A stretch of 63,226 nucleotides of DNA, taken from Chara braunii (taxonomy: Eukaryota; Plantae; Charophyceae). Below, piece after piece: positions 2,501 through 52,932 of this stretch. A program made the position numbers and the translations under genes. The DNA lies in assembly GCA_003427395.1 (NCBI GenBank), contig BFEA01000031.1:4956736-5019961 (forward strand). The letters run 5' to 3'. Numbering within the stretch: the stretch's first letter is position 1; each line of letters opens with the position of its first letter. The notes beneath the pieces were generated by a model. The model was not told the DNA's origin and ran no database searches. It saw only the letters and a program-made list of their open reading frames with translations.

Positions 2501-2633
2501 TCGACACGTGACAAGGTTCTAGGATTCATAGCTGGGCGATCTGGCTAACAGGGGACGACCTCGACCGCGGAATGCGCATCAACGGGACCCCGTCGTCACT
2601 AGAAGCCAGTCTGCGGCCCAACGCACAGTCAAC

Positions 2634-7560: not shown

Positions 7561-7646
7561 TTCCTCCTTCGCTACAGAGGAGGACGACGATTCTTTGTCA
7601 CTCTCATCCCCTCCTGTCTCTCTTGCTCCGTCCTCATCTCCATCGC

Positions 7647-9992: not shown

Positions 9993-12455
9993 TGTGACGA
10001 ACCAATTTCTGTTCCGCGTGATTCTCTGCGCGATGACAATCAGGGGTCCTAAGATGGGAAGGTTGGGCCAATTAGAGGAGATCGGGATCGAAGGAAAATT
10101 GCATCAGTGTCCTCGCTTTTTTGTCTTTTCTCTTTCGTCGCTTCTTTTCGAATGGCTGGGTTCAGGGCCGAGCAAGTCCCGAGAGGGCCGATTAAGTGGC
10201 TGTCGCGCCGATAAAGGCGGGAATAATAATGTTTGACATCGCTTCTTTCTCGTTCTGTTGTCGGGTTTTAGGCGCGGAGGTTGCGAAGGAATTTTGCTTC
10301 GTTCTTTTTTTATTTCTTTTCGATTCTTGTCGAACCCTTGACGGCTCTCGGAACTTCGGATTTTCTTTTCAGAATTTGTGTTTCTTTTTACATCAGCTAG
10401 GAATTTAGGAATTCGGGATTTCTTTTGTCGTGCATTGTCTTTCTGGAGCGTTTCTTTTTGCGGCTACAACGTAGCTCTGAATAGTCAGCGCCCTTAATCT
10501 TGCAAGTAACTGTAATTTTTGGGTGGGCACCATTGTAACTGTATTTTTCTTCTTGAGCGTCGTCTTTCCCACCCTCTCTTTCCTTTTTGCTGTGCCTGGT
10601 TGGCCCCGTGACCTGCATGCTCGGATCGATACGTGGAAAGTGGCTACGTCCCCCACACCGCGGTCTGGCCATGCAGAACGTAGGCGGTCCCTCTCCTAAT
10701 CCCCTTTGTAAGTCCTTGCAATTTTCCTTGCAATTTCGTGTTCTTCGCGCATGCATGCACGCTATAAATTCTGGCAGCGCGATTAGATAGCTCTCTTGAC
10801 CAGTTGTTGGAAGCTTGGGGTAGCGCGATCAGTGAGGGTCGGCTCAGGAGTGAACTAAGAGGTGAGTTGAAGTGGAGTCGGGCGACCCGGCGCTGGTCCC
10901 GAATGCGAGGGGCTGACGCGTGGGGCTACGACGGACTGTAGCAGGCGGGTGAACCTGACGGGTGCAGGAGGACTAAGCGGGGTGACGACTTCGTGGGTTG
11001 GTGTGGGACGACTAACTGCCAGCATCGGAGAGAGAGAGAGAGGAAGAGGGAGCTGAGGTTGATGGACGTGGATTTGCAGTTTTCTTTGTCTTTCTCCCTC
11101 TTTGCTTTTGTATATAAATTTTGATCTCGGCTTAGGGCAACTCGCTTGTTTTTTTTTGCTTTCAGAATCCTTGTCTCGGTTTCAGCCCACACTCGTTTTG
11201 TGATTGATCTTGATCGCGTTTGTTGTGTGTTTTGTCGAATGAATGGATGAATGAATGTCATATCTGTTGCTTTTCTTTTGTCTGGTCCTTGCCTTTGCTT
11301 GTCATTTTGATACACACGTGAGCATAGTAGAAACTTCTGCGTAGTCGTCATTACTGCTTTCATTGTTGTTTATCCCTTTTGAGCCACTATTGTAGCTGTG
11401 ATGCCTGATGTGTAATAGCACCTTGCATGCTCAGGAACGATTGCGTGCGGGATCACGGAGTGATTAGATAATTGGGTAGTTTATTGTCCAAAAACAAGGG
11501 AATACCTCGCGGGGATGTGTGTAAGCGCGATCTGATCTGCACGACCTACACATATCCACGCACACCGATTCACGACCATTGACGAACTTGACACCTTCGA
11601 TATCTGGTAGGCGGGTATTTTCCTTCCCCCACGCACCTAAACGGATAGGAATTTACGATATCCCATCGGGAAAATCCCCCTGCCAGTTAGACGCGTGTGG
11701 AGGAATTCCATCACACCAAAATGATCAGATGTCGAGCTCATGGGACTCGGAGTACTTCGACCCTTGTGTGAGAGAATGTGTTAGGCAAAGATACCCGAAA
11801 TTTCCCTGCCTAACCGAGAATTGATTGTGCCCCAGGGAGTTTCACTGTGCCACTACCAGCGATCCTAGGTACCCCGATTTTTCCACTACGTACAACACAC
11901 AATACTTCATATCCTTCGGCTCGGTCATTATCACTACCAATTTCCCTCCCTTCCGCCTCCTCCTCCCGTATCAGCAACTCACAGTGGTTCCGTGGAATTC
12001 CATCGCCCCGTACTGACCCCGCACGCCTTGCGAAAATTGTCGGCGACGCAGCAACCGACGAACCCCTGAAACTAGGGGGCCTAACCAAAACGCGCGATGA
12101 CAGAGGCCACGTGTCTGCACCCTAAGGTCCGACTCATCGAAACCGCAACCATCCCGGGCGGGTCTCTCCCCGAACCGCCCCCAACAAAACAGACGGATCG
12201 GACGACCTTGAATGCACCGTGCAGGTCATCTACCTTATGCTGCACGACCTCGACCGCCATCAGACCAGAAGTAACTCGCCCCTTAGCCCTATTGCATCTA
12301 TACCTCTGAAACTTTGCCACAGGAGATCTCAGTTTCGACCTGGGACTCCACCCCCACTTTCCCAAAAATCCTTGGCACACCCCTTTTCACACTTCCAGGC
12401 CCACATCCCACTCCGATCAGGAAGTCGCGTTGGGCGTGAGGTTTTGGGCGTCACA
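9993..12455 (+). repeat. Full-length LTR, 2463 bp
   Basis: Termini TGTGACG...CGTCACA form a perfect 7-bp inverted repeat. TATAAA at 10763. The 3' two-thirds match 905-2488. Confidence 0.9.
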
Positions 12456-21959: not shown

Positions 21960-24900
21960 TAAGAACGATGGTTCCTTGGGTTGACAGACAGAAGGTGGGG
22001 CGAGGGATGAGGCAAACATGCGTTCCTATTTTCTATCAGACATCCCGCATCTCGGGTTTTTTGTTGTTTTCACTATGTGTGACTATGTGCATCGTACTAT
22101 GTGAGTGCTTGTGCGCTTTGATTGCCCTTCCGCAAACACTCAATAATTGTCAGAGGTTAGCTGCTCCGTTTTGGAGGTCAAAACCTGGTCAGTCTGTGAA
22201 GATCTGAGCAAGAAAGCGGAAAGACGACAGCAGGAGGATGTAAAAAAATAACCGTCCGATGTGGTGTGATCAAAGGCTTCACGAGCACGCTCAATCTCAT
22301 CTATGTGTAATCGTAGGGAACCTCCATGGAGATCGCTCTCTGTTGACTGATACATCAGTCGGTACGAAGCGTCGGAGAATCCACAGATTCAACAGGGGAT
22401 CTGGTGGCGATGTTTTTGGTTAAAGGGGAAGCCAAAAAACAAAAGCAAAAGGAGAAAGAAGAGCGGAAGAAGCAACAGAAACAAACTCAGGAGAAGAAGG
22501 AGAGAGAGAAATGCAAGTGTGAGAGTAACGCGAGATAACGACTTGAGAACGATTTGAGAACGATTTGAGAGTAGCGCTAATCATTGATATGCAACTGTCA
22601 CGAAGATGGGGTTTGCTACTTCAGGAACAGGGGATCGAGCACAAGCAAGAACGTAACTGGAGGAAGAAAATGCTACAACACAAACTAAGCGGACGACAAG
22701 TGGCGACTAAATCTGATATAAACAAAGAGATTGTGACAATAAGTGCGGAGATGGAAAGAATGAAACTAAACTCTGAATTATTTTCAGAAGAGGTAGAACC
22801 CGAGTCCCCAGATATTAATCCTCTGACATTAACTGCAAAAAAGATGTACAAAACAGCGAAAGGAAGGGGAAGACCACGGAAGACACTACCAATGAAACCT
22901 CACAACATCATCAAGGACATAATACCAGGAGTGGGCCTAGACGCGAGGGAACGTTATGTGCAAGAGGTGAAAGAAAAAATGGAAACACTTGATTACAAAA
23001 AGGTTAAGGAACCGTGTCAACACGATCAGGTACCGTACATCAAGAAGCAGCAAGCGATTGTCGACTTTGCTGGGCGGCGGACAGGCAAAACCTTTTGTCA
23101 TTGAAAGGCTACACCTTTACCATTTCTACCTCCAAGAGAGTCCAACAACTCTGACACAAAATCCTCATCCTGAGAAGTATCCGAAGAAAGTGATAGCGAT
23201 GGGTGCAACCACTGGACTATCCAACAATTGTGGGGACTTTGTCGTGGGTTAATCTGGGAGTGTAAGGAATATGTTGGACTTGATCATGAGTTGGTGGTGA
23301 ATTTGAGATTGGTTGTTTCTGCTCTTACTACAAGTGGTTGTATACTATGGGGGAGGAAATTCCTGCCTGACTGGATGACGTGGTTTCTCAATCGTGATGA
23401 GGGCTTGGACGTTGGAGAAATTTGTGTGTATGTCAGGATTTCAAGTTCCCCGTACTGCAAAGTAGTTTATATCGGAAAAAACAAGAAATATATCAATGTC
23501 TGATGGAGTGATCATGGTGGGAAATGTTGCCGGGAGGGTCCGAGAAATCACTTTCATCAATGACTACGAAGCTATGAATGGGATAAGTATGTTTTACTCC
23601 CAATTTTGAGCGTGACAGCAAAACAAATATCGGTAATTGAGGCCTATTATATTAATATTCGAGTTTAGTTCTAAATAGCACCGGATGTCGATCTACCAAT
23701 GCTCGACGCTGCGACGACGCATTAGGGAGGGAAGGAGAGAAAGGAGAAAGAAACAAGTACGTAAGCATAATAACTCGAGTCATATGTCATAGGAAGGCGT
23801 TGGTATTATCAAGTTCAGTGTGATCGAAGGACGAGCTAGTTTTCGTTTGAATAACTTGTTGCTGAAGTAGGATTGTCAATATGTTAGAATTTTTTGCTGA
23901 CATCTTGTGGAGGGAATGCTTGGTAAAGATGGGTAGAAACGGTTAGAAAGAGGTTTCGTTCAATGTGTGGTTATTTGCTCGGGCAAAACTAAGTTTCTGC
24001 TGGATTATAAATATTTTTTGAAGCAAGGAGGTATTGTTTAGATCATTAAGTTGCGTAAATGTAGAAGTGTCAATACTAAGGGCAGACGATATCTGATCTC
24101 CCTCCTTACGAACAAGAGTAAGCAAATCCTGAAATCTAAATGTAATTTTATTTTTTTTCTCAAACTTTTCCCCGTGGTTAAGGATTTCAGTATGAAGCTA
24201 ACTAGATCTCTGCTCAGACGCATCGTTAACAATGTTGCTAAGAATGGATATATCTTCGACTTATAGAAAAAATCCATTGCCAACATTTAGTTCAATGATC
24301 GAAACAATTTATGAGGGGTACGTAGACTTCTTGAAAGTAAGATAAACAACTTGCTGATTCCTGTAGCAGTCCGTGAGACCCCGAAGCGGAAAGTGGGAAA
24401 GGTCTAGACTAAAAAATCGTGAGTTATTGACATACTTCATAACCACAGACTTTATGTACGGTGGGAGGTTTCCACTTGCACTTGTGCAGGGGTTCCGCTT
24501 CCAAGGTACAAAGGACATGTGCGTTGCAGAATCTGGGATGATGTCCGACTTTTGTCGTTTCTGCACAATGCACGTAATATTTGGAGAGCACTGAATGTCA
24601 GCAAGATAAACCAATTACATCTCAGGTTATTAAAAGTCTGTTTCGTTTGGTCATTGGGTGGAGGTTTCCAGTTAGATTTTAGTGCAAAGGAAATCGCAGC
24701 CTGTATGAACTGCACTTTAAGCCATTCTGGTGAGTTGTCTGCAGATTAAAACTATGAGGTGAGGATATTGTACAAGAATCTAGTATTGGCACCGACAGAT
24801 CGAAACTCTGGGAAACTATCGTCCGCAGATTTGATTCTATATTCCTAAGAGTTTGCTAATACTGCTCTGAGTTTTGCTCAAGTTTGTTTCTCTCAGTTGA

Positions 24901-24960
24901 AGTTGGGTAATGGCCCCTGTACTTCTCAACTTTTCCTTCAAATATCTCTTAAGATCTTTA
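21960..24960 (+). mobile_element. Degenerate Penelope-like element remnant (GIY-YIG endonuclease N-terminal, truncated before the RT core)
   Basis: ORF 23228-23503 CVYVRISSSPYCKVVYIGK fits the GIY-YIG motif. Downstream fragments CAGVPLPRYKGHVRCR...FLHNARN and LVLAPTDRN. Upstream coiled-coil/AT-hook ORF 22565-23104 (KGRGRPRK). Confidence 0.6.
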
Positions 24961-27900
24961 GAAAGGACGTTGGGCTCGGTTCCCATCCGTGCTGCTTCCC
25001 CACGAACATATTGAAGCTTTGTCCCTTAAAAAAAAAAAAAAAAAGGTGTGGCGAGCCTCTAAGTGATCATGAACTTGTCGCAAGTCCGCTTGTTGCCCTG
25101 GATACAGAGGACCGAAATGGATCCTTGGGACAAGTTGGCATGTCATGCTTGCAACAGGCTCTGGATCACGGTTGCAAAGTGGGTATTTTACCTCGAAATC
25201 TGAACATGGGGAACATCTCCGAAAAAGATGAACATGGGGAACGTCTCACGAGAAGATGCAGACGAGGAAACACTAGAAATGAATGCAGACGAACAAGCGG
25301 ACCACCATGCAATCCCATGGATGAATAAACACTTGGGGGTGATTTCATTTCCCCCTAAGGATGAAAACCCAATCCCGCTCAATCTTTTTTTATTAGGGAA
25401 ACAATGCGGGGGTCACAAAAATGAGTAATAATTGCACTACAAGGCCATGGGCCAAGATACAGTTTCCGAATGCAGTTCGGGCAATGTATACAACCTAACT
25501 TTCAGGCAAGATAAGGTGCTTCGAGCCGAAGTGCAATTGCAAACTGTATCTTGCCCCAATGCCCCATAGTGCAATAATAATTTTTTTCTGTTACTCTATT
25601 TTTTTTTTACCAACCACATAAACGCAACCCTTTTTTTTTCCTTTAAAAAAAAAAAAAAAATTTGCGAGTCGTCCATCTCCACGGTGTTGAGTGAACCCCC
25701 GAAATCGAGGCCTTGACTGTCAGTCTGCTCTATTATTTGGTGGGGAGCAACCCTTTTTGGAGACCGGATCCACCGTCTCTTGGATACGGCAATTAAACAC
25801 TTTGTATTCCTTTCCTCTGGTTTTTGAGGCTGTAACCTATACTTTTCCTATGTTGGAGCTCAGTTTTCCCCTGGGGCTGCATGCGTTACCCATCCCAGTC
25901 CGAAGCTCTCTACTTTCCACTTTAGACTGAGATGGAGGAGGGTAGGGTGACATCATGACAAACGCCACCCCCCAAGGCTTTGATCTGAGCAGCTTTATTG
26001 TACAGTACCAGAATCCTACAGACTGGCAGATCGAAAAACGAGGTCCCTAGCAAGTGTGGCCATTGCAAAGCGGGGAGTGGTCCTGTTGGTGGACCTTCAG
26101 GGATCGACAGGAGACTTTCAGGTTAATGTTGTCAAGCAAGCCAGCCTCCGTCGGATGCTGTCATTAATGGTTACCCCATTGGCAGTGTGAGTGATCGGAA
26201 GAGACATGGACATAGCACAGGGTTGCTCGCGCCTATGTTCCCCCCAGGCCGGGCCGGCCGCGAATTTTTGGTCGAGGCCGCGACCGATCGAGGAGGCGGT
26301 TTTGGGAGCGGGGAGCGGGTTTACGGTGGGGGGGCACCCCCTCGAAGTGGCAGACCGTCAAAAAAATAAAAAACGGGGGGGTCCTACACATGGGCCTGAA
26401 AGGGCGGACCGGGAAAATTCGTTCGTCCCCCGAGTGGTGTTTCGTCGATGCAGGTGCGCAGGGAAGAGGGTCAGGAACACATGGGAAAAAAAAATATATA
26501 TATTTGACCCCTGCGGGGGCGGGTTAACGGGGGTTGGATGGGGGTTGGATGTGGGTTGGGTTGGGGCGGGCAGGGCGGGCGAGTCAGGTGGGGGTTGGGC
26601 GGGGGTGGGGATGGCAGACCCCAGGCAGCTCAGGGCCTCAGGCAGGCGTCAATTTCATTTGTGAGGGTGTCGAAAGTTCGTGAATTTTTTTGAAACAGCA
26701 CATTCATAGGAATCATAGGTCAAACCCTATTTCGCATACCAAGGTCACAAAACATTCACAATGAATCACAATGCGGGCAACCATAAGTCGTAAACAATGT
26801 TAACAGGCAATTGTGTCACAGTGTGTGTTCATTCATGAGGCTGGTGAAAGTTCGCGAAACAACACATTCATTAGCATATCATCCCTGTTTGGCATACGGA
26901 ATTCACAACACATTCATAATGGGGGCAACCATGACATGCATGTGCGTGGCATCCGACAAAGACACGATTTGCAACATTGCGACAACAATACCCGCTGTGT
27001 CGGGGACATTTACGACAACAAACCAGAAACCGCTCGACTCATATGCAAAACCAAGGCTGGAAGAGGAACATGAAGAAGAACAAATCAGTGACAAAGCATT
27101 TCAATGGAAATGCGTATGTACAAGGCCAAAGCCAAAAACCGCACCCCTCAACACCATCGTCTCTACCGTAATACCGAGCAGCTAAAAAAAAAAAAAAAAA
27201 AACCTAACGCCCACATAATGTCGTCATCTCCATGGAACAACATCAATATAAATATGGAACTACCCTGCAAAAAAAATGTCCAGCCAAAAAAAAAAAAAGT
27301 AATGAAATAAAAAAAACACCACTGACGCCGTCATCTGCTCCCAGAAGAGCGGCCCGTGCCCCTCCCTGTCGGAGGACGCGTGCAGCCTCTCCCGGAGGAC
27401 GATCGACCATGCTGTCCTCCCGGGCGCCCTCCTCTCCTTCTGGCACCTGTGCCCTCCACACCACTGATGTATGCCGCCTGTCCTGCAGCGTCTGTCGCGG
27501 CCACGGCCGCTCTGCGTCTGCGGACCACACTCTAGAGCGGCTCGGACTCTGTGTCTGCGTCCTCGTCCTCGACCGCCTATGCAGGAACCGTATCTCGCTG
27601 CCTCTGAATCGCGTCCAACGCTGCCTGGTCGGCGGTGACCTCTGCTGCGAGTCGAGCCTCCACTTTTGTAATGCCGCGGTGTCGTTTCGTCCCGGGACGC
27701 ATCAACAACCCCTCCTCGCCCGATGTGTGCAGTTGTCCCTAATGCATGTCCGTCGATGTCCCTGCGGCCTGGAGGACCAATGATCTCCTCGTCGCCGCTC
27801 GTGACAAACCGAGCATGCGGCCTGCCATGTGAAGGCTCGAATGTCCGGACCCACCCTCCGCAGCCTGCGTCTGATCTGGCAAACGTCCCGCGAAGACGCC

Positions 27901-33446: not shown

Positions 33447-35602
33447 TGTGACAATCTCTTACATGTAAGAATGCCATCTTCTACGTAGTTGTACTGAGGA
33501 GGTTGGAGAAGAGAGAGAGGTGGGAAGGGGGGGCGTGGGGGGGGCCAATTGCACTAATGCCCCTGTTCTTTCTAGAAAGTTGAGACCACGACGATTGGGA
33601 GGACACGCTATAGCGAGTACGAAAAATAGTGATTGACGCAGCGTTTTTTTTTTTTTTTTTTTTATCACGGAACTGGGCGGGGATATTTTGGTGCGGTTAC
33701 TGCACAGAGAAGTTTCTTGAATTTCTTTTTGAATTTTGAACTGACACAGGTTCTCATAATTTCTTATTGCAGTTAGGATTTTAATTAGGCTAGGAATTTG
33801 TGAGGATCGTAATTTTGTCTGTAATGGCACAGGGCTCTCTACTCGTGCACGCATAAGTGCGTATTGCTCTACACCCTGCTTCCGCAGCGCCCTACATTTG
33901 AATCGCAATTGTAAGCGCTTCTTTCTTTTTCTTGGCGAGCGCAGACGTAACTGTAATCCTCGCCGTTCTTAATCTCTTCTCTTTCTTTTTGCCACACTGA
34001 ATTTTTTTTTTGCCTCTCTCCCGTCTGTCTCATTGGCTTACAAGTGCATGACTGGATCGATGCGTGGAGTGCGGCTACATCGCCCACAACGCAGGTCCCT
34101 CGTGCACCCGAAGGCACTCCCTCCTTCTCACTTCGTCCTGGGTAAGCATAATCCGAAATTACCTCGCCCAACTACTGACTGCTATAAAGCTCGCAAGCGC
34201 GACTAATTCACTCTCTAATCTACACTTGGGAGTTAGCGCGATCGAGAGGATCAGCTAACGAGCGGAGACAGGAAGGTTGGGTATGCGGGGTTGACATGTG
34301 TCCACGAAGGACGGTGGCATAAGGGCGAATCTGGCTTGCATACTCGGACCAAGCGGGGTGACAACTTCGGGTTGTTGATCGGTGTGAGGCGACGGACTGT
34401 CCGCATCGTGGGAACGTTGAGAGAGAGAGAGAGAGCGATGGAGAGAAGACGGTGTGCTGAAAAGGGAATTGTTTTCTTCGCATCCTCTGTGCAATTTTGA
34501 TCTCCCGCTTCGGCGTTCTCCATTGTGGCACTTTCTGGACTTTCCTATCTTTTCTTCGATTGATGTATGAAGCATTTTTATCTTCCCCACCTCTTCGTTT
34601 TGATTGTCTGAAGGATTGTTGTTGTAGAAACAAGGGCGCAAGAAATAAACGGCTTGCGGAAGTGTGAAGATACGTATGTGAATCCGCCCACTTGTGACAT
34701 AATAATGCCCTTGTGATGATCGGACGTGACGACAGTTGTCCCGTATACGAGTGTTTGCCTGACTCGGCACCTCCTCTCGTTGCACAGTCAAATGTATGAG
34801 TCAAGCCCCCCTTGCCCAACATGGATGTCCGCCTGCCATTCTGGATCATGGACCGTGCCTGTCTGAGGACCCCGAGTACAGGGAATACTGGGGTAACAAA
34901 CAACTCTTTCGCCGATCGAAATTACGACTTCCAGTTTACTACTGTCAAACGGAGGACGATCGGCAGTGTGCTCGGGACTTTCACCAGGCCCTTGGACGGA
35001 ATTCCCGAACCCGAGATTACCCCAACGCCCGTAATTATCATTACCATCTTACATTGGGGTTCGATGTCATTGAAACCGACTTCCCTCTATTCTATCTCCT
35101 TTTCCCCTATCACCATCTGACGGTAGTTCCCTGGGATTCGATCGCGCAATGCTGGCCCCGGAGGCCGTGTTTTGAGTGCTATCAGTACAACACTTACCGG
35201 GCGGTGGGATTCGTACAATGGACCCGCTTTGAAGCTGAGCACCGAGAACACAGTCTCTGGCTGACGCCGTCCACGTCAGACTCGGAGATTTGTGAAACTC
35301 GCCGCCGACAGGTGTTTGAACAGAGAGACACCCGGTGTGTTCCATCAGTGCACCAGTTGCGAACTTGTCCGAGGCGACGGGGCCAGTGAAATTAGTCATT
35401 CGACCCTGAGAAAAGGCAAAACCCTAGACCCGGCCCTGCACAGAAACCGCTTTTCCATCCCCGAACCTTGACACAGGAGATCTCAAGTCCGACCTGGGAC
35501 TCCACCCGACCTCCCTAAACTCCTTGGCACACCCCTACTACGCATTTCTCCCCTATCACTCCGAAAACGGGAAGTCGTGTTGGGCGTGTGGTGGGCATCA
35601 CA
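33447..35602 (+). mobile_element. Solo LTR (2156 bp), distant relative of the 9993-12455 LTR
   Basis: TGTGAC...ATCACA termini. Flanks GGCCT/GCCCT (5-bp TSD with 1 mismatch). TATAAA at 34183. The 3' end gatctcaagtccgacctgggactccaccc...gaagtcgtgttgggcgtg is shared with the other LTRs. Confidence 0.85.
34796..35389 (+). CDS. LTR-encoded Cys-containing protein of unknown function (197 aa, open)
   Basis: Amino-acid similarity and an excess of third-position differences against the disrupted homologous frames at ~1740-2116 and ~11690-12070. Confidence 0.6.
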   Translation: MSQAPLAQHGCPPAILDHGPCLSEDPEYREYWGNKQLFRRSKLRLPVYYCQTEDDRQCARDFHQALGRNSRTRDYPNARNYHYHLTLGFDVIETDFPLFYLLFPYHHLTVVPWDSIAQCWPRRPCFECYQYNTYRAVGFVQWTRFEAEHREHSLWLTPSTSDSEICETRRRQVFEQRDTRCVPSVHQLRTCPRRRGQ

Positions 35603-36289: not shown

Positions 36290-36376
36290 GCCCTCCAGGA
36301 CATCCGTTAAAATTTGAGTGATTTAGAGAAGATTAGCATAGCCCCCGCACAAGGATGACACGCATAAATCGAGAAA
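36290..36376 (+). pseudogene. U6: U6 snRNA pseudogene, 3'-truncated, with A-rich tail
   Basis: ggacatccgttaaaatttgagtgatttagagaagattagcatagcccccgcacaaggatgacacgcataaatcgagaaa matches plant U6. The ACAGAGA box is mutated to TTAGAGA. Confidence 0.9.
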
Positions 36377-36983
36377 AATAAATAAATAATAACATCCATA
36401 TGTATGATTAGGGGGTTGTCCCCAAAAAACAGAAAGTGGACCATTTTGGCAAAACATTGTCAGAGAGACGAGGGCGGCGGCGGCGGCGCTCCGGTAGCGC
36501 TAAACATAGTGCTAATCGCTAGCGCTAATTCTGCGCCTAGGCGCAGTAATTACGCCAAGTATGATTAGAGATAGGGTTAGCGGTACCGTCCGCCTCCCCC
36601 TCCCCGCCCTTCTCTGTCGTGGTGTGAATGTCAGAGAGATGGCAACTCCTCATTTGCTATCTAGGCCATTCTCTCTGACACCCGCTGTGAGCTTGAGGCG
36701 AAGGTCCTTCTGGTAGTCGGGTATTATCAAGACTTCTGGACCCGGGTTATGCTTTCCTTTCTGTCGGAGTAACGAATGGACAGGTAAAACTCTTCTCACT
36801 TCTCGATTGATGGGGATGGAGTTTATCCTTTGATTTATTTGAGGCTTCCTTATTAATATGGTTATACGATTATTTGGTTGAATGCTTGTTTTAAAATTTT
36901 AGAGCAATTTTGTGTCAACGAGTGAATTCAGCTTATTGTTGTCGTGGATAGAAATTACATTGGATTCGTGTTTGAGAGACACG

Positions 36984-39591: not shown

Positions 39592-42500
39592 ATGGTCCTT
39601 CCCGATAAAATTGCAATCTTGAATTGGAATGTAAGAGGGCTAGGTGACTCTAATAATACCTATAAAAAAAATCGACTGTCGTCGTGGATCTATTCCAAAC
39701 ATGCTCACTTGATCTGCCTTCAGGAAACCAAACTTGATGCGGAAAAAATTGTGAAGCCCAAAGATGGTGGTCGGGCCCGCAAGTTTGGGCTCCTGCGGAC
39801 GGATCAAAGGGAGGGGTTGCAATACTTATCAACAAAGATTTGGATGTGGTAACCCTAGACAGCTATGCAGATATCGAAGGTCGGTGGGCCTGAAAAAAAA
39901 TACCAGTTGAGGACGAGGACTGGGCGATAATGTCAGTTTATGCGCCTGTCGAATACCCTGCCTGCATCGATTTTTTTGCGAACTTACCAAAATATATTCC
40001 TGACACGGAAAATTTGATTTTGGCAGGGGACTGGAATACAGTCCTCGTCCCAAGTCTCGACTCTCCACGTCCTGGGCCCTTAAGAATGAATGGTCAGTTA
40101 CTCTCTGAACTGGTTAATTCTCAGAGTCTTTTCGATACATATCGGATTTTGAATCCTGAATCACCTGGTTATACTTGGCATGGCCCTAGGCCTTCTCCTC
40201 GCGCTCCTCAACCAAAGAAAAGACTGGATGTCATCTATGCGCGGGGATCCCCCTGGGATCGCTGCATTGGGGCGGAACTGAAGTATGGGTCAATGTCTGA
40301 CCACAATCCGGTGATCATGGACATCATTGCTAAAGATGTCATCAAAAAGTTTAAACCGTCGTTCAGATTGAACGTTAAAATCCTGAAAGATCCGGGGATC
40401 CCGTCTTGGGTGTCCACACAGGTAAAAAACTGGGATAAGGCTAGAGACCTCTTCCACAGCGTAGAGGAGTGGGCAGACACTGGGATTGCTATTATTCAGG
40501 CTGCCATAGAGGAATTCTCTAGGATGAAAGCAGCCGCTCGCTCGTGGAAAGAGAAATGTTTATTAGCCACTATCGAAGAAGCAGAGAATTCAATGGGGGA
40601 TGACCCATTTACGGAATATTATTGGTCAATTAGGAGAACTGTCGCACGCTTGGAACTGGGGCAATTGGAAATCCAGCGTCAGTCTGACTGGTTGGACTGG
40701 CTAAAGGTGAGGCAACTGGGGCAACTGGCTATAACCGGATGACTAAACTCACCTTCCGGTCGTTGATTCTTCGTCAAGCAAAACCACCAAGGAGGGAATT
40801 GATCCATCCTTTTGTCCTGACGGCTCCCCTTGCCACTGAAACCACCCAAATATGTTCCTATGCAATAGGACATAGTGACCACCAGACGGCCGTATGATTC
40901 CTTTAACACTAACTTATCGGAATTTTCTGATTTTTTTAATAAGACTCAAAAGAAAGTTCCTCTGACTCAAAGAAACCTTCTTGAGGCTCCCATCACAGAG
41001 AAAGAGGCTTTCTTGGCAGCCAAATAGATGGCCTCAGGCAAATGCCCGGGCCCGGATGGCCTGAACTCTTTCTCTGTGCATGGGAAGCCTTTGCCCCCTT
41101 TTTATGTGAAATTTACAATACGGTTCTCTCGACAGGCTCCCTCCCTAAAGGGTCGTCCGGGGGATGATTTCTCTTCTATACAAAAAAGGGGACAAAAGGG
41201 AGGTACGCAACTGGCGTCCGATCTCCATTCTCAATGTGACTAATAAACTGTTAGGGAAGATCCTGGTCATCAGACTTGCGGAAATTCTCCCCTCTTTGGT
41301 TGGGGTAGAACAGCGAGCCTTTGTCAAAGGGAGGTCTATTTTTGAAAATATCCTAACGACGATTCAGGCACTGAAAATAATCGGAAAAGAGAATAGGAAC
41401 TTAGCTATCCTTATGCTTGACATGGAAAAAGCTTATGATAAGGTAGGCTGGGCGTTTGTGAATACATCGCTGCTGAGGCTGGGCTTTGGCCCCAAGTTTT
41501 GTACTTGGACTAAAGCTCTCTATGCGAATGCAACAGCTGCGGTTGTGGTAAACGGTAAACTTTCCGAAGAATTCACCCTGACGCGCTCCTTGAGGCAGGG
41601 TTGCCCCCTGGCACCATTAATTTTCGTTCTCCAATTAGATGTATTGCTTGATAATATAAGATTCAATAATAGTATAGAAGGTTAGAGGTCACCCCCTTCA
41701 CTGCATTGGAAGGTGGGGGCTATTGCTGATGACTTAACCGTGGCCTGCATGAATACCTCAGATTGTATGCTTGAACTACGTAAGATTTAAGATATGTATT
41801 GCGAGCTATCGGAAGCCTCAATAAATTGGGATAAATCTATCTTTTTCCTCCTCCGTCATTTCGAGTTGTGTGTAGAGTGGGGACTGCGTCGGGTGCCTGA
41901 TTCTTCTTCTGACAGATTTCTGGGAGTACAGATTTCTCTTTCAGATTGTTCTTCGATGCAGGATAACATATTGGTGGACAAAGCGGTTTCCAGAATGGCA
42001 AAGTGGGAACGGAGGCACACTCTTTCTCTCTTTGGTCGAGCTTTAGTACTCTATGCTTCTGCATTTTCAACCCTCTGGTTTCCCCTGGCGGTCTGCTTGA
42101 TAGGAGAGGAAGCCTACAGGAAAATTAAGAGAGCTGCTGCACGTTACCTTTGGAAGCCGTCGGCAACTGAAGCGCAAGGTTTTATCTCCAAAGTGGCCTG
42201 GGAAGCAATAGCCAGCCCACGGAGCCAAGGAGGCCTGGGGGTATTGGATCCCTTCAAGCAAAACCTTGCCTTGGTGTCAAAGTGGCCAGTCCAAGCAATG
42301 GTCGGTGAAGAATGTAAACTCTGGATGAGACTGGCGGAATATATCTTGGGCAGCGAATGGGGGCTGGAGGACCCTTCAAGAGTGTGGTTATGTCTCATGT
42401 TGCCATCATATTCACAGCGACGTCCCCAATCAAGAATCTGCCGAAAGATTCTCTATGCCTGGTATAAGCTCAAACCTATGGAGTGGAACCTGCCTCAGAC

Positions 42501-43818
42501 GAAAATGGAATGCCTAAATCAACCTTTATTTGACAATCCTTACATTCTCCAGCAGGATGGCAAGCCGTTTGCAGTTAAAGGGGGAGCCTTAAATTTTGGT
42601 AATTCATGGATCAAGAAAGGAATCCTTCAAGTCAAAGACATCTGGGACTCAGATGCCTCCGACTGGTTGGACGAAGAAGCCCTGAGAAGGAAACTTCCCA
42701 GGGTACAGAATCTGTCACGAAATTATCAAGCCTTGCTGGAAGCAATACCGCAGGGGTGGGCGTACTTGTTCCAGGCAGACATAGAGAATGTGCAGAACAC
42801 TTGGGTCAGATCTCCGACTCATACTAATGAGGTGTGGAGAGTACTGGGCCCAGCTGAGGAACATGGTATTAAGGTACAGTCATGGTCTCTCCCTTCGATC
42901 TTTCGGACCACGGGGCAGCTACGAGAGACTGGAGAACTTACGGTGCCGAAAACTTCAGATTTAGAAGAGGTGCGGGTCTTCCTACAGGAGGATGGGAGGG
43001 AAAAAGCCACAGCTTTTCTAGGGAGAGATGCAGTCTCGTATCGAGTGGACCCCCTCCTATATGGATGGAAGGGGCTTAGGTCCAATGACTCTTTTATCCC
43101 CCTGTACCAGTATAACTCTAAAGTAGGGGTTGAAATTCAGAATGCTAAATCAAAAGTTACGCCGGCTTCCCTGGCCCTTAAAAGGGCTGATCAGCAGCAA
43201 CTATCAGGAGTCTCAGAGCAAAATTTGAGAATTCTTTGGATTGCTCTGAAGAAACTCCCTTCTCAGAAGCAGGCGGCAATTATTTGGTTACAGTCCCTGT
43301 TGGTTACTGCGACCGCATTGTATTTGTCGAACAAAGGGATGGAGGTCTCCCCCACCTGTCTACGTTGTAATTGGGGCTGGGAAGATCATGCTCATCTGTG
43401 GCTGTTCTGCCCCATGTTGGATGATCTGTTAGAATGGTGGAAGAGGCGTTGGCATTCACTCCACGATCAAGAAATGCAGTGGTCCGATGATTGGTGGCTT
43501 ACAGGAATCCTCCCTTCGACACTCTGCTTACACTCAGGAACTGGGTATGTGGCTTTTTGTTGTCGAGGGGCGCTGTTAGAGAGCATCTGGACAGCACGGA
43601 ATGCTAAGGTTTTCAAGGGCGAGACTTTCTCAGTTCACCAACAGAAGGCACTGATGAGGTCAAAACTGAGAATAGTTATCACTGCGGACTGGATTCAGCA
43701 CCGAATACCCGGAGCTAGGAACTTACAGTGGTTCCAACGCACCTGGGGCTCCTTTAGCAAATGGGCGACAATTAGCCCTGAGGGGTCCTTCTCTCTTTCT
43801 CCCTGGCTTTCGTGTTAA
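39592..43818 (+). pseudogene. LINE ORF2 (APE endonuclease, reverse transcriptase, zf-RVT)
   Basis: NWNVRGL, ICLQETK, SVYAP, LAGDWN, RLDVIY, SDHNPV; KCPGPDG, LLYKKGD...NWRPISIL, LDMEKAYDKV, SLRQGCPLAP, ADD; CLRC...EDHAHLWLFC. Several stops and frameshifts. Confidence 0.93.
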
Positions 43819-44841: not shown

Positions 44842-44940
44842 GTACTTCGGGACATCCGTTAAGATTGGAATGATACAGAGAGAGAAGATTAGCATGGCCC
44901 CTGCGCGAGGATGATCCGCAATAATCGAGAAATGGTGCAC
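44842..44940 (+). pseudogene. U6: U6 snRNA-like copy (probable pseudogene)
   Basis: cttcgggacatccgttaagattggaatgatacagagagagaagattagcatggcccctgcgcgaggatga...atcgagaaatggt. Has a 4-nt GAGA insertion after ACAGAGA, no oligo-T terminator and no TATA at -30. Confidence 0.9.
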
Positions 44941-45300
44941 ACACGCGGCTGTTAGCAAACACCTTAATATAGGCTCGTACCCAGGGAGCCGGGTGAACGT
45001 AGTAGTAATGGCAAGGGCTACCCCTTTTCCTTTTTGTTTTTTTTTTCGTTGTTGTTTTTTTACCTCTTTTAGAAAGGAGGAGAAAATGCGTGTGGACAAA
45101 AACAAAAACAAAAACAAAAACAAAGAGTCTGATTCCACGGGGGTCTGTTAAGTGACAGACTTGTGTATTATTCAGCCTCAGGACCACGTGCCGGGAGAAT
45201 GGGGACTTTCTCTCTCGCCTTCCCACTGCGGAGGAAGCGGGCCGCCTCTCCACTCCCGCACCTCAGACGGATCGATCACGAGAACGGCGGAGTCCTTAGG

Positions 45301-45307: not shown

Positions 45308-45513
45308 CCCCTCAGTAGGCGTACTCCCACCAGTCCAGCGTCGTCTCGCAATCCAACCCATTACGGATCGGTCCCCTCTTCCACCCTCCCCTCCTACCTA
45401 TCAAGCTGCCATCGCCGGTGCTCCAGCATTAGCAATTTAGCTCCATCACGGTGGCGGAGCAGAGCAGATTTGAATCCCAGAAGAAGCAGAGCAAAGTGAG
45501 AACGGGGACGAGG

Positions 45514-46584
45514 ATGGCGGCGACCGTAGATGACCTCTTGAGGCTGGAGATGCCTGCGGGTGAGAAGCGCATCATTGCAGAGTACATCTGGGTGGGAGGG
45601 AGCGGTCTTGACCTCAGGAGCAAGCCCCGTACCCTGACTGGTCCCGTCAAGTCGGTGTCTGAGCTTCCCAAGTGGAACTACGATGGCTCCAGCACGGGCC
45701 AGGCTCCCGGCGAGGACAGCGAGGTGATTCTCTATCCACAGGCCATCTTCAGGGATCCCTTCCGAGGCGGGGACAACATCCTTGTGATGTGCGACTGCTA
45801 CACTCCTCAGGGCGAGCCCATTCCCACCAACACCCGCTACGCCGCCAACAAGCTGTTCCAGCAGGCGCTGGAGACGGAGCCGTGGTTCGGCCTGGAGCAA
45901 GAATACACTTTGCTGGAGAAGGAGCACAAGTGGCCGCTGGGCTGGCCCGTCAATGGCTACCCCGGCGCGCAGGGGCCGTACTACTGCGGCGTGGGTGCTG
46001 ACAAGGCGTGGGGGAGGCGCATCGTGGACGCCCACTACAAGGCCTGCGTGTACGCCGGCATCACGATCAGCGGGACCAACGGCGAGGTGATGCCCGGGCA
46101 GTGGGAGTTCCAGGTGGGGCCGGCCGTCGGCATCGCGGCCGGGGATGAGCTGTGGGTGGCGCGGTACTTGCTGGAGCGGATTACCGAGTTGGAGGGGGTG
46201 ATTCTGTCCCTGGACCCGAAGCCCGTGGAAGGCGACTGGAACGGTGCCGGGTGCCACTGCAACTTCAGCACCAAGGCGATGAGGGAGGACGGCGGATGGG
46301 AGGTGATCATGGAGGGCGTGAAGAATCTGGAGCTGAGGCACAAGGAACACATCAAGGCGTACGGCGAGGGCAACGAGCGGCGGCTCACGGGCCGCCACGA
46401 GACGGCCAGCATGGACCGGTTCTCGTGGGCCGTTGCGAGCAGAGGGACGTCCGTGAGGATCGGAAGAGACACGGAGGCGAAGAAGAAGGGGTACATGGAG
46501 GACCGTCGCCCGGCGTCCAACATGGACCCGTACGTCGTCACCTCCCTCGTCTTCGACACCACCACGCTCTGGAAGCCATTATAG
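45514..46584 (+). CDS. GLN1: Glutamine synthetase type II, cytosolic GS1-like, 356 aa, intronless
   Basis: [91 protein letters not shown] at 45514 gives the canonical 356 aa (the ORF track starts at an upstream GTG). Confidence 0.97.
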
Positions 46585-48725: not shown

Positions 48726-49944
48726 TTGTGTCGGACCCGCCAGGATGGTAGTCCGAAAAGATGGAGAACAAGGGGTTCAGGACGGAGGAACTGGAGATGG
48801 AGCTGGAACGAACAGCGCAGCTCCGACGCAGACTCAACACCGCACGTACTCCAACAAGTGCAAAATGAAGAATGACGAGATACAGAGTGCAACTGGGGTA
48901 TACCCCCAGCGGACTGACTGGACTGGACTGGAGCGGTCTGGTACTGACAGTGGTACCGGGCAGGACTGGACTAGATAGAAACAGTACACGGCCTGTGGGG
49001 TCAGGCCACGGCCTGGTCCCAAAGGCCGAACTGGTAAATAGTTGAATAGGCCCTGGTTGTAGGCCAGTGGCCGTAGGCCAGGGCAGATGGAGGCCCGTTG
49101 TACGATCCTCAGACCTGTAATGGATCGCAAGAGTCATAAACACGCTATCCGAGAAAGAAGTGAAAGTCTGCAATAAACAGAAAGTTGATGCGGAGCACAC
49201 TTTATGCGGAGTCCATGCGATGCAGCCTCAGCTACATAATGTCAAATGAAATGCAAATGTTTGGTATACACATCCTAGCTAACAGCAGAAAATGAAATGT
49301 AGCAATATACAATCCTAAAGTCCTTGAGGCAATTGCCCCAGTGCTGAAAGGAAAAAAAAACAATATGTCACAAGATAATGTCATGTCGCTGAACCACTAA
49401 GAGTGGGATGGTCTCAGAGGGGGTGAATGCCGCCTAAGAATCGAAACTCCTAAGGGCAGTCACACATGATGGTGGGAGAGTGGTAGCGAAACAAAACCAA
49501 TAACCCTAACATATAGAACATCGGGGTGGGTAATGCTCGACAAAAGGATGACACCATGCAGGGTCGACCATAAAAAAAGGGGAGCCTGAAATAGGGTGGA
49601 GATATGCCTAACTGAAGGCATGCAAGGGTCGGCACTAGGGTGATGAGGGCAGTGGGTAAGGGAAATATGCACACAACTAACCGACTGGGAGAGGAGGGAG
49701 CTAGATCTGGGAGCAAGGAAGCCAAGATAACGCTACGGTCCCATTGCCTATGTGATACCAAGGGAGAGTCCAACTCAAAGAGACTCAGCTAAATGAGAAT
49801 CATCATGCGACATATGCAAGGGAATGTATAGGGTAGGGTGGTGGCTTGAAGTAGTCACGTCCAAAGTAGTTGAAGCCGATAAGATGGTTGAAGTCGACAA
49901 GGTGAATGAAGTCGTTGAAGTGGTCGATGACGTCGATGAAGTAG

Positions 49945-51715
49945 GATTTTTTCCCGAGTTAATCCAGAAGTGTAAGGAATACCTTGGAGTTGATCATGAG
50001 TTAGAGGCGAATCTTCAATGGGTTGATTTTGCTCTTAGTGCAGGTGGTTATATAACATGGGGGAGGAAATTCTTGTCTAACTGGACGACGTGGTTTCTCA
50101 ATCGTGATGAGGGCTTGGACGTTGAAGAAAGTTGTGCGTATGTCGGGAATTCCCCGTACTGGAAAGTAGTTTATATTAGAAAAAATGAAACAGATGTCAA
50201 TATGAAATAGAGTGAGGAACGTGGGAAATGTTGTCGGGAGTGTCCGGAAAATCATTTTCGCCGGTGGCTACGAAGCTGTAGACGGAGAAACTATGTTTTA
50301 CTCTCACTGGTGAGCGCGACAACAAACGAACTGCTGGTAATCGAGGTATATTATATTAAACACTGAAGTTCAAATCTTAATACCATCGGTCGTCGATTCA
50401 CCAATACTGGACGCACCATGGAGGGAACGAGAGAAAGGAGAAAAAAACGAGCATCTAACTTGAGTCATATGTCAAAGGATGAAGTTAGTATCATCAGTTT
50501 CAGCATGAACGAAGGCTGAGCCAGTTTTCGTCTGAATAAATTGCTGCTGAAGCAGAATTGTCAATATGTTAGGAACTTTTCAATGACATCTAGTAGAGGG
50601 AATGCTTGATAAGATGGGTGAAAACAATTAAAATGAGGTTTCGTTCAATTTGTGGTTATTTGTTCGGGCAAAACTAAGCTTATGCGGGATCATAAAAATT
50701 TTATGGAACAAGGAGGTACTATTCATATGGTTAACTTGTGTAAATGGAGAAGGATCAATACTAAGGGCAAACGATATCTGATCTCTCTCCTTAGGAATAA
50801 GAGTAAATGGGTCATGATATATAAATGCGATTTGTATTTTTTTTATCGAATTTTTCATCGTGATTAACGATTTCAGTATGAGGCGAAGTAGAATTCTGCT
50901 CAGACTCATTGTAAATGTTGCTATTAAGACTAGATACATCTTTGACTCATAGAAGAAGCTCGCTGTGAGAATCTAGTTTAATGATCGAATTAGTCCATGA
51001 GGGGTACGTAGACTTCTTGATGGTAAGATAAACAACTTGCAAATTCCGGTCGCGGTCCGTGAGACCCTGAAGCGGAAAACCAGAACGGTCTGGATAAAAA
51101 ATTTGTAAGTTGCTGACATACTTCATAACCATTGACTTTATGCATGTCGGGAGGTTTCCGACTGCATTTGTGCAGGGGTTCCGCTTTCGAGGTTCAAAGG
51201 ACATGTGCGTTGCACACTCTAGGAGGATGTCTGGGTTTCGTCGTTATGGGACACTGCACGTAATATCCCGAGAGCACCGAATGTCGTCAGGATAGACCAA
51301 CTACGTCTTGATTTTTTGGAAAGTCTATTTGGTTTGGCCATTGGTCAAAGGTTACCAGTTATATTTTAGTGCGAAGGAAGTCACAACCTGTATGAAGTGT
51401 AATTTAAGCCATTTTAGCAATTTGTCCGCAGATAACGACTATACGGTGGGGATATTGTATGAGAATCTAGTATTGGCACCGACAGATGGAAACCCCGAGG
51501 AGACTATCGTCCGTAGAATTTGGTTTTATATTCCTAAAAGTTTGCTCATGCTGCTCTGAGTTGTGCTCAAGATTGTTTCTCTCAGTTGAAGCCGGGTAAT
51601 GGCCTCGATACTTCTCAACGATTCCTTGAACTATCTGTTAAGATCTTTACAGGGGATGTTGGGCCCGGTTGCTAGCCGTGCTGCTCCCAATGAACATATT
51701 GGAGCTTTGTCGCTT
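49945..51715 (+). mobile_element. Second Penelope-like remnant, paralogous to 23235-25030
   Basis: Colinear similarity (e.g. tggtttctcaatcgtgatgagggcttggacgttg); CAYVGNSPYWKVVYI; ENLVLAPTDGNPEETIV. Confidence 0.6.
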
Positions 51716-52932
51716 AAAAAAAAAAGGTGTGGCGAGCCGCTAAGTGATCTTGAACTTGTCGCAAGTCCGCACGTTGTCATGGAACAACATAATGCCATGG
51801 ATACAGAGGACCGAAAAGGATCCTTGGGACAAGCTGGCATGTCAGACTTGCACGAGGTTATGAATCAATGTTGCAAAGTGGGTATTTTACCTCGAAATCT
51901 GAACATGGGGAACATCTCTGAAGAAGATGAACATGGTGAACATCTCAGGAGAAGATGAGGATGAGGAAACACTAGCAATGAACGCAGACGAACAAATAGA
52001 CCAACAAGTAGTCGATTGGCTGAAGGAACATTTGGGAATGATTTCATTTGGCCCTAAGGATGAAGACCCAATCCCGCTCAATATTTTTGTATTGCCAAAT
52101 TATGAGGGAGTCACAAAAATGAGTTATAATTGCACTATGGGCCAAGATACGGTTTCCGATGCAGTTCGGGCAATGTATACAGCCCAACTTTCTGGCAAGG
52201 TAAGGTGCTCGAAGTGCAATTGCAAACAGTGTCTTGCCCCATAGTGCAATAATAACTTATTTTTGTGATTCTATTCTTTTTTTTTCCAAACACACACACG
52301 CAACCCTTTTTTTTTTTGCTTTTGTTTTTTGGAAAGCCCTTCTACAAACCGTCCATCCCAGCGATGGTGTGTGAACCGTCGGAATTGAGGCCTTGGGCGT
52401 GGGGCTGCTCTATCATTAGTTATGGAGTGGCCCTTGCTAGAGACCAAGTTCAACGTCTCTTAGATACAACAATTAAACACTGTGTATTCCTTTCGTCTAG
52501 TTTATGAGGTTGTAGCTTGTACTTTTCCTACGTCGAAACTCAGTTTTCCCCTGAGGTTGCATGCGTTACCCATCCCAGTATAAAGTTTTCTACTTTCCAC
52601 TTTAAACTAAGATGGAGGAGAGTAGGGTGACACCATGATACTCGCCACCTCCCAGACCTTGGATCTGACGAGCTTCACCGTACAAAATATCCTACAGACT
52701 GGCAGATCGAAGAACGAGGTCCCCAGCAAGTGTGGCCATTGCAAAGTGGGGAGTGGTCCTGCTGGAAGACCTTCAGGGATCGACAGGAGACTTTCTGAAG
52801 CTGTTTATTTCGTCTAACCTCCTGGATGTCAAGCAAGTCACCCTCCTTCGGATGCTATCATTAGTAGTTACCCCGTTAGCAGTGTGGTTGATCCGAAGAG
52901 ACATGGACATTCTACTGGGTGGCTCGCACTAC

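Follow-up and report, generated by a model that had tools for sequence, protein, structure and literature searches.

The long terminal repeats (LTRs) of retrotransposons are treated as non-coding control regions, which are masked by annotation pipelines and assumed to be neutral for age estimates. The DNA analysed here, a stretch of 63,226 nucleotides from Chara braunii (contig BFEA01000031.1; the window), contains an open reading frame (ORF) within an LTR, and an earlier note on this sequence had proposed that it is a protein-coding gene conserved at the amino-acid level between diverged LTR families. This raises the question whether LTRs can carry a gene of their own. According to our analyses, the ORF is very probably an intact copy of a gene of approximately 165-200 codons that is integral to the LTRs of a related group of Ty3/gypsy elements. 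Ten copies from three lineages (S, A, and B) were found, five of which are intact ORFs of 164-197 aa. The gene is previously undescribed and has no known relatives or fold.

The reading frame and its LTRs

The window contains a full Ty3/gypsy element and a remnant LTR with the following features.

943-2489, + strand: 5' LTR of the full Ty3/gypsy element; the PBS TGGTATCGGAGC comes next at 2489-2500
1776-2254, + strand: broken lineage-A gene copy in the 5' LTR, with a stop at 1812 and a frameshift near 1950 (tblastn with P0001)
10884-12443, + strand: 3' LTR of the full element, 90% identical to 943-2489
11729-12208, + strand: broken lineage-A gene copy in the 3' LTR, with stops at 11822, 12014, and 12098
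34040-34257, + strand: conserved stretch upstream of the remnant LTR body, with CTATAAA at 34182-34188, then GCAAGCGCG
34258-35592, + strand: remnant LTR body, alignable to the 5' and 3' LTRs (MAFFT alignment, blastn blocks, end alignments)
34796-35389, + strand: intact LTR-borne gene of lineage S, 197 codons from an ATG start, stop included in the span
34937-35179, + strand: conserved core domain (aa 48-128), running from YYCQTEDDRQC through GFDVIETDFPLFYLLFPYHHLTVVPW to CWPRRPCFEC (alignments)
35204-35386, + strand: C-terminal half, GF..R.E.EH, then a PSTSDSE acidic patch (35267-35287) and a basic tail

The element at 943-12443 has the organisation of Ty3/gypsy, with two direct LTRs, a PBS, and domains in the order gag, PR, RNase H, and IN. 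Between the LTRs, Retrotrans_gag was found at 2634-3440, an aspartyl protease at 3883-4782, RT_RNaseH at 4847-5248, and rve at 6668-7030. The RVT domain itself was not detected in this element, and thus the copy is defective. The gene is present in both of its LTRs, lies wholly within the repeated sequence, and is encoded on the sense strand. For these two LTRs the earlier note had given a homologous reading as a composite, and the homologous sequence was indeed located in each of them, although both copies are broken. Over 161 aa, the copy in the 3' LTR shares 46% identity with P0001.

The ORF at 34796-35389 contains the peptides that had been quoted for it, and each of the other frames contains 2-16 stops. 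In the core of the gene, the residues F96, P97, P104, L108, and W113 are invariant, and Cys58, Cys125, and Cys128, the only invariant cysteines, are kept across all intact lineages. The C-terminal half is common to lineages S and B and degenerate in lineage A. The gene is predicted to encode a small protein of basic character (pI 8-10), in which a hydrophobic beta-rich core is combined with a Cys cluster and an Arg/Lys-rich tail; the final 45 aa contain 9-15 K+R.

The LTR around the intact ORF is a remnant. Its body ends where the 5' LTRs join the PBS and is followed by GGGCATCACA at 35593-35602. The approximately 220 nt directly upstream of the body (34040-34257) match 10614-10883, the sequence that immediately precedes the 3' LTR in the full element, and no match to internal element sequence was found further up- or downstream. 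This feature had been described as a solo LTR, but it is not cleanly solo. The CTATAAA motif of the upstream stretch also occurs inside the family-B LTR (5' boundary at 45859 of L003 and 48 of L001), which suggests that 34040-34257 is probably part of the true LTR and contains a candidate promoter. Because the CTATAAA region is absent from the 5' LTR of the full element, and no convincing TG...CA terminus with a target-site duplication was found around either the remnant LTR or the full element, it is uncertain where the window LTRs truly begin on their 5' side. Adjacent LTR DNA had been said to barely align between the LTRs. This is correct for the immediate flanks of the ORF, but a block at 34280-34440 and another at 35455-35592 (77% identity) do align.

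Relatives, coding signal, and selection

Copies of the gene were sought by an exhaustive profile search, a word search, a metagenome scan, and tblastn. Seven copies were found beyond the window, one in Chara braunii (BFEA01000018.1), five on four BFBZ01 contigs, and one on an ENA metagenome contig. Among 1.84 billion representative proteins, the profile of the core had only three real matches, namely P0001 (E 5e-24), P0002 (E 9e-11), and part of the Chara braunii gene model GBG61242.1 (E 2e-9). The word search contributed P0005 (ENA metagenome), the metagenome scan L007 and L008, and tblastn a degenerate copy on L001 (-); word searches that used the complete 197 aa or the three-sequence core gave no match. 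One further candidate, the ENA repeat protein P0004 (E 5e-4), was rejected as a chance match on a low-complexity repeat. In tblastn, the window ORF matched the copies on L003, L001, and L002 with E values from 7e-24 to 1e-16, and aa 53-184 were covered on L003 and L001. The relatives found come from Chara braunii and from contigs that look like Chara.

A coding function is indicated by the distribution of differences over codon positions 1/2/3. In ungapped alignments, 35015-35203 of the window ORF differs from 1922-2110 at 19/21/41 sites (p=0.004), and 34967-35200 differs from 11828-12061 at 28/25/52 sites (p=0.002); blastn independently gives the same alignment offset. The excess of third-position changes that the earlier note had seen by eye is thus real. 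It is also seen when lineage S is compared with every other lineage (p 0.003-0.035). In the best pair, L001p and L003, the differences are 26/27/73 (26/28/74 in the alignment of the whole LTRs), with a dN/dS of 0.16. L002 and L001m differ at 25/28/63 sites, and L004 and L001p at 63/55/108 sites with saturated dS. The comparisons of L008 with L002, L001m, and the 3' LTR of the window element gave dN/dS values of 0.17-0.18 (0.17 for the 3' LTR). Across five independent sublineage pairs the ratio is approximately 0.16-0.18, and not near 1, the value that had been named as evidence against a gene.

Would a conserved non-coding element of the LTR, such as promoter or enhancer DNA or an RNA structure for packaging or dimerisation, leave the same traces, with the frame as a by-product? 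Conserved non-coding blocks are known in LTRs, and in the present LTRs the DNA conservation of the 5' block and of the U5 block at the 3' side equals or exceeds that of the ORF core. Likewise, L001 and L003 are approximately 70-76% identical in the LTR sequence outside the ORF, as compared to 75% within it. However, in the alignment of these two whole LTRs a 3-periodicity of substitutions exists in the ORF only (p=3e-8). It is absent from the 1252 nt upstream (132/123/124; p=0.84) and from the downstream flank (p=0.81). A non-coding element is also at odds with the dN/dS values of the five sublineage pairs and with the five frames that have stayed intact although synonymous divergence is saturated, a combination that supports the proposed LTR gene. 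When neutral change was simulated at the observed third-position divergence, the ORF remained open in at most 0.8% of the runs. RNAalifold found no consensus structure (-1.05 kcal/mol, 9 pairs). This explanation, very improbable in our view, is largely refuted.

The alternative that the real gene lies on the antisense strand is more remote still and hardly credible. In each of the three window copies, an antisense ORF is open over the block (35067-35399, 1811-2134, and 11810-12088, coding for 110, 107, and 92 aa), and tblastx found 49% identity over 37 aa. Their third positions, however, are the second positions of the sense frame, which are among the least variable, and the antisense ORF of the remnant LTR stops at 35067, inside the conserved block. 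The intact copies at other loci contain 1-16 stops in every antisense frame, and the antisense frame that shares its third positions with the sense frame contains 6-16 stops in every intact copy. Antisense coding and RNA structure, both of which had been listed as possible causes of the conservation, thus do not account for it.

The sense frame is thus shown to be protein-coding and to have been under purifying selection while the element lineages diverged. A different pattern was found after insertion. The 5' and 3' LTRs of the window element differ at 11/16/18 sites in the ORF region (p=0.41), where their identity equals that of the flanks, and L007 and L008 differ at 8/10/11 sites. Because the differences between the two LTRs of an element are neutral, the target of selection is the replicating element, as for gag-pol, and not the inserted copy, in which the frame decays neutrally. 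The S lineage of the window has a long branch (0.93), with synonymous sites that are saturated relative to all other copies. For this lineage itself, the evidence of selection consists of the positional skew and the intact frame.

These patterns also bear on the origin of the gene. Accessory ORFs of retroelements are often thought to have been captured (PMC7264820), and the ORF could be an ancient host fragment carried along in the LTR or could have been domesticated by the host, in either case without a role in the life cycle of the element. We consider this improbable. Apart from the chimeric gene model discussed below, no cellular homologue was found among the 1.84 billion representative proteins, and the position of the ORF is shared by three LTR lineages whose divergence has reached saturation. 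Purifying selection between the lineages, together with neutral decay after insertion, is the pattern left by a gene that the replicating element needs and the host does not.

Position in the LTR and predicted expression

The location of the gene relative to the LTR borders is stable. The copies of L003, L007, and L008 lie upstream of a U5-PBS junction, with gag zf-CCHC and PR additionally found downstream in L003, and the distance from the end of the ORF to the end of U5 or the PBS is constant in all three lineages (approximately 200-250 nt). A conserved CTATAAA motif is situated approximately 600 nt upstream of the ORF. The earlier note had placed the ORF downstream of the TATA box of the LTR. 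The box of the other two LTRs, TATATAAA (at 1173 and 11111), is deleted in the remnant LTR, where a different conserved motif, the CTATAAA at 34182, precedes the ORF. In six copies, no AATAAA- or TGTAA-type hexamers were found between the ORF and the end of the LTR. Because the ORF lies downstream of CTATAAA and is not followed by a poly(A)-type hexamer before the LTR end, the gene is most likely contained in the R/U5 part of the LTR. These assignments, including the U3/R/U5 borders and the route of expression, are deduced from motifs.

An LTR promoter, with CTATAAA as the candidate, would thus be located upstream of the gene, which would be transcribed as the first cistron in the 5' leader of the genomic RNA, before the PBS and gag. 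Lone LTRs whose promoter still fires would transcribe the gene as well. The ORF of the window is intact but resides in a remnant LTR, and its present-day expression is hypothetical. In this copy, the sequence from CTATAAA to the start codon contains nine ATGs, of which one is located 4 nt before the start and in another frame, and because of these upstream ATGs simple scanning from the CTATAAA promoter would be inefficient.

Alternatively, the ORF might be an exon of a longer spliced coding sequence, for example by extending gag at its N-terminus or by belonging to a host gene such as Chara CBR_g19774. The Chara braunii protein GBG61242.1 does use codons of the L003 copy as an internal exon, and an acceptor-like motif is found before the start codon of the window copy. 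This motif had been pointed out by the earlier note, and the string CTGAC...TGCACAG is present at 34758-34787, but it is confined to the window copy and no acceptor-like motif is conserved in the others, which argues against an exon. Moreover, the start (MWTN) and stop positions are the same in L001p and L003, the periodicity ends at the stop codon, and five copies are full ATG-to-stop ORFs of similar lengths. The gene model itself (GBG61242.1/CBR_g19774) spans 78 kb, fuses a DCP1/WH1 protein to transposable element sequence, and looks chimeric. An exon is considered improbable, and a self-contained LTR gene is strongly preferred.

The product and its place among known systems

What the protein does can be addressed by its sequence only in part. 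None of the seven members scanned had a Pfam family above threshold, the MMTV Sag family and the zinc-finger families being included in the scan. A Pfam line for 2_5_RNA_ligase2 (16.7 bits against a cut-off of 27) was taken as chance. The profile search of the PDB gave no match, and ESM Atlas feature searches with the window ORF and P0002 gave no usable match. AlphaFold2 models were unusable, with a pLDDT of 42 for the core (three sequences) and 39 for the full length (eight sequences), and too poor for an evaluation of metal-binding geometry. The zinc binding that the earlier note had considered possible is not supported by the alignments, in which three cysteines are invariant. C58, C125, and C128 could be joined by a fourth ligand, for which the candidates vary among the lineages: where S and A have C50, B has Asn, and the residue at position 119 is Cys in lineage S, His in lineage B, and Tyr in lineage A. 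The product may act in trans on the RNA or nucleoprotein of the element, for example in RNA binding and packaging, nuclear import, or the regulation of expression, a suggestion that we regard as tentative and rather doubtful. An extended version of this idea is less likely again. Each LTR would then be a self-contained gene with promoter, leader, and ORF. Lone LTRs would supply a trans-acting protein (a silencing suppressor or RNA chaperone), dead copies would be a resource shared by the live family members, and the Cys/His swap at the fourth ligand would mark an undescribed metal-binding fold.

The closest parallel is the sag gene of MMTV, which is also a complete sense ORF, is contained in an LTR of unusual length, and is maintained by selection as an accessory gene. 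The two genes are not related in sequence, as neither Pfam, including the Sag family, nor the PDB gave a match. They also differ in context. MMTV is a mammalian retrovirus, whereas the host element in Chara is an algal Ty3/gypsy retrotransposon without env. Furthermore, sag resides in U3, whereas the ORF of the window is downstream of the TATA-like motif and hence probably in R/U5, and sag is expressed from spliced mRNAs through an acceptor just upstream, whereas a conserved acceptor was not seen in the Chara gene family. Coding sequences that share LTR DNA are also known from other retroviruses: nef of HIV-1 overlaps the 3' LTR, and HBZ of HTLV-1 is transcribed antisense from the 3' LTR. These genes overlap the LTR only partly or are antisense, whereas the Chara ORF is sense and entirely inside the LTR. 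The antisense promoter of HTLV is located in the 3' LTR (PMC7264820).

Plant LTR retrotransposons contain additional ORFs (aORFs), among them gene23 of Grande, those of RIRE2 and Retand, ORF1 of Ogre, and env-like ORFs (PMC7264820). Like the Chara gene, these are family-wide extra ORFs with unassigned functions and no database homologues, they show conservation among related families of elements, and some of their products are nuclear or basic (PMC7264820). However, all those described are internal to the element, in most cases between pol and the 3' LTR, and many are in antisense orientation. The Chara gene is family-wide but lies outside the internal region, and thus differs in location from an aORF in the sense of PMC7264820. 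That article contains neither the phrase "in the LTR" nor "within the LTR" and mentions no aORF inside an LTR. A location in the LTR is unusual for a gene outside a few animal retroviruses. Owing to this location, the Chara gene is duplicated at both ends of the element and left behind in solo LTRs.

A selected LTR gene is a plant-lineage counterpart of the arrangement seen in MMTV sag, and it places an orphan protein family among the few accessory genes listed for retrotransposons. It also means that, between families, the LTR does not serve as a neutral clock over its whole length, and it accounts for chimeric host gene models such as CBR_g19774. Solo LTRs are very numerous in the repeat-rich 2-Gb genome of Chara braunii, and they could supply a protein and not promoters alone. 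With one small basic protein, the gene offers a concrete and testable handle on the extra functions needed by these retrotransposons.

The reading frame, its host LTR and neighbouring elements

The ORF described in the earlier note lies within a remnant LTR; it comprises 197 codons, begins with ATG and contains the peptides quoted there. The window also holds a full Ty3/gypsy retrotransposon, whose 5' and 3' LTRs (LTR5 and LTR3) are 90% identical to each other and each carry a homologous copy:

943-2489 and 10884-12443, LTR5 and LTR3 of the full element
2489, primer-binding site (PBS) TGGTATCGGAGC, directly after LTR5
2634-3440, gag
3883-4782, aspartyl protease
4847-5248, RNase H
6668-7030, integrase core
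34796-35389 (+), window ORF

In the full element, the protease and RNase H domains nearly abut (4782-4847) and no RVT domain is detectable between them; it thus looks like an RT-deleted, non-autonomous copy. Three long ORFs without Pfam match between the integrase and LTR3 (7163-7651, 8225-9163 and 8934-9650, all +) could be internal accessory ORFs of this element.

According to MAFFT and blastn, the ORF-carrying LTR is a distant relative of LTR5 and LTR3, alignable with them in four blocks: the 5' part, the AATTTTGATCTC motif, the ORF core (34945-35200) and the final ~140 nt (35455-35592; 77% identity). The core alignment is gapless, and blastn recovered its offset independently of any frame. 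Both gene copies in the full element are broken: LTR5 has one stop plus a frameshift, LTR3 three stops. This explains why their peptide could earlier be read only "as a composite". Here the broken copies were read with X at stops only, and neither a consensus nor a repaired version was made.

Elsewhere in the window, two U6 snRNA matches (36290-36390 and 44842-44946, +; 72 and 65 bits; ~80% identical to each other) flank a LINE-like stretch with an endonuclease domain (39930-40742) and zf-RVT (41794-43818). A 377-codon ORF that lacks introns and encodes both glutamine synthetase domains, N and C (45451-46584, +), lies directly 3' of the second U6 match and may be a retrocopy. Direct repeats of ~3 kb (23234-26230 and 49944-52927; 76-94% identical, 26.7 kb apart) enclose the remnant LTR and the LINE, and may represent a giant element or a segmental repeat.

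Relatives of the LTR gene and selection on its product

Pfam and word searches with the window ORF gave no match, and an exhaustive profile search was therefore used. It returned three real matches: P0001 (164 aa; E 5e-24), P0002 (173 aa; E 9e-11) and, within the 1077-aa "hypothetical protein CBR_g19774" of Chara braunii (GBG61242.1), residues ~440-590. The gene model of the latter, 78 kb long (10001-88218 of locus L003), fuses a DCP1/WH1 protein to the LTR gene, which serves as an internal exon, and is probably a chimeric prediction. The DNA of these three matches lies at the loci L001 (BFBZ01005442.1), L002 (BFBZ01007459.1) and L003 (BFEA01000018.1:3200914-3299131). On L001, tblastn detected an additional, degenerate minus-strand copy (L001m; the plus-strand copy is L001p). 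P0005 (175 aa, on the ENA metagenome contig L004) was found by a word search with the family alignment, and two more BFBZ01 contigs with the gene (L007 and L008) by a JGI-type metagenome scan. The LTRs of BFBZ01 (assembly GCA_003427375.1) share 72-79% identity with the window LTRs and with those on the Chara braunii scaffold. Homology spans about aa 50-185 of the window ORF, beyond the core recognized earlier; P0002, L003 and P0005 have homologues of its C-terminal half (GF..R.E.EH...PSTSDSE...RD.R with a basic tail after it). A maximum-likelihood tree resolved three lineages:

Lineage A: LTR3, L002, L001m, L007, L008 (LTR5 was assigned here from its identity to LTR3)
Lineage B: L001p, L003, L004
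Lineage S: the window ORF, on a long branch

The excess of third-position changes previously noticed by eye holds up in counts of differences at codon positions 1/2/3, which were 19/21/41 for the window ORF versus LTR5 (63 codons, p=0.004) and 28/25/52 versus LTR3 (78 codons, p=0.002). Between the window ORF and every other lineage, synonymous sites are saturated and the positional skew is retained (p 0.003-0.035). In estimable pairs, dN/dS between sublineages was 0.16-0.18.

Differences at codon positions 1/2/3 and dN/dS (pairwise Nei-Gojobori on codon alignments) between gene copies
L001p vs L003 (171 codons): 26/27/73; 0.16 (bootstrap pN/pS 0.18-0.37)
L002 vs L001m: 25/28/63; not estimable, dS saturated
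L008 vs L002: 42/41/82; 0.17
L008 vs L001m: 23/27/54; 0.18
L008 vs LTR3: 57/46/89; 0.17
L004 vs L001p: 63/55/108; not estimable, dS saturated

The decisive control was the whole-LTR alignment of L001 and L003, which gave 26/28/74 inside the ORF (p=3e-8), 132/123/124 over 1252 aligned bases upstream (p=0.84) and 18/14/15 downstream (p=0.81). Identity within the ORF is close to that of the rest of the LTR, so it is the pattern of change, not its amount, that carries the signal. An antisense coding frame was rejected, as the frame sharing third positions holds 6-16 stops in every intact copy, and so was conserved RNA structure, of which RNAalifold finds none. In neutral simulations at the observed third-position divergence, the frame remained open in at most 0.8% of runs per lineage; five copies, drawn from all three lineages, nevertheless run uninterrupted from ATG to stop (164-197 aa). 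These coding tests and intact frames give good support to the central proposal of the earlier note, namely that the LTR carries an accessory gene for a protein.

The two LTRs of one element are identical at insertion. LTR5 and LTR3 differ by 11/16/18 in the ORF region (p=0.41), where their identity (0.906) equals that of the flanks, and the close pair L007 and L008 by 8/10/11. Inserted copies thus decay neutrally, and the protein was kept in the replicating lineages. A gene of the element, such as gag, behaves in this way; a host gene does not.

Position within the LTR and possible expression

In all lineages the ORF has gag-pol orientation and ends ~200-250 nt before the LTR end. The LTRs of L003, L007 and L008 pass directly into the PBS, which in L003 is followed by gag with a zinc knuckle and then by protease. 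Upstream of the ORF, CTATAAA followed by GCAAGCGCG is kept in lineages S, A and B, with CTATAAA at these places:

34182, in the window remnant LTR (S)
10762, upstream of LTR3 (A)
inside the family-B LTR, whose 5' boundary (L003 45859) was fixed by the L001/L003 comparison

We infer that the true starts of the window LTRs probably lie farther upstream, near 33910 and 10484, in which case the first ~400 nt of LTR5 would be missing or replaced. Against this, a purine-rich tract lies just before 10884, and a search for a target-site duplication of the window LTRs found none.

Every LTR copy other than the 5' LTRs is followed by a GGGCRTCACA-like 10-mer (window 12446-12455 and 35593-35602; L001 ~2549-2559), which the four 5' LTRs (window 2489, L003 47990, L007, L008) lack, running straight into the PBS. 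The 10-mer may mark the actual end of the LTR, a favoured target site or the remains of a PBS. In L001, a ~530-nt AT-rich insertion at 1976-2507 interrupts the family-B LTR; it contains a 177-nt palindrome, partly matches window 60780-60884 (81% identity) and looks like a MITE.

If CTATAAA is the promoter, the ORF falls in the transcribed part of the LTR. It could then lie in a long R, which we consider rather doubtful, or in some other arrangement of the LTR. The preferred reading, with about even chances, is that the ORF lies in a long U5 and would be the first cistron in the leader of the genomic RNA, because it is downstream of CTATAAA, hexamers of the AATAAA or TGTAA type are absent from the stretch that separates ORF and LTR end in six copies, and an A/T-rich motif follows CTATAAA after ~310 nt (TATATAAATTTTGATCTC in lineage A; AATTTTGATCTC at 34493 in the window). 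Nine upstream ATGs in the window copy argue for a nearer start site or an involvement of splicing. The acceptor-like motif pointed out earlier is present at 34758-34787 but is not conserved in the other copies.

The protein and comparison with known systems

The protein is basic (pI 8.2-9.7), with a variable, Pro-rich N-terminus, a conserved core (C-x(6,7)-C ... GFV.I.T.FPPF.LLLPY..L.VVPW ... WPR..C..C), an acidic Ser/Thr patch and an Arg/Lys-rich tail. Only three Cys are invariant and a candidate fourth ligand varies with lineage; zinc binding is no more than a possibility. Pfam, PDB and the ESM Atlas yielded no relatives, and AlphaFold2 pLDDT was 39-42. The favoured guess, albeit one we regard as unlikely, is that the protein acts in trans as a cofactor of the element, either binding nucleic acid or regulating.

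In a review of plant LTR retrotransposons and their additional ORFs, every such ORF is located in the internal region and none within an LTR is named (PMC7264820); full-text literature searches for LTR-located ORFs returned essentially only sag of MMTV. This superantigen is encoded by an exceptionally long 3' LTR and expressed via an acceptor immediately 5' of its reading frame (PMC3026287). The Chara gene resembles sag in architecture, whereas the sequences are unrelated and the part of the LTR concerned is probably different. It represents a retroelement accessory gene located in the LTR, and a new protein family.
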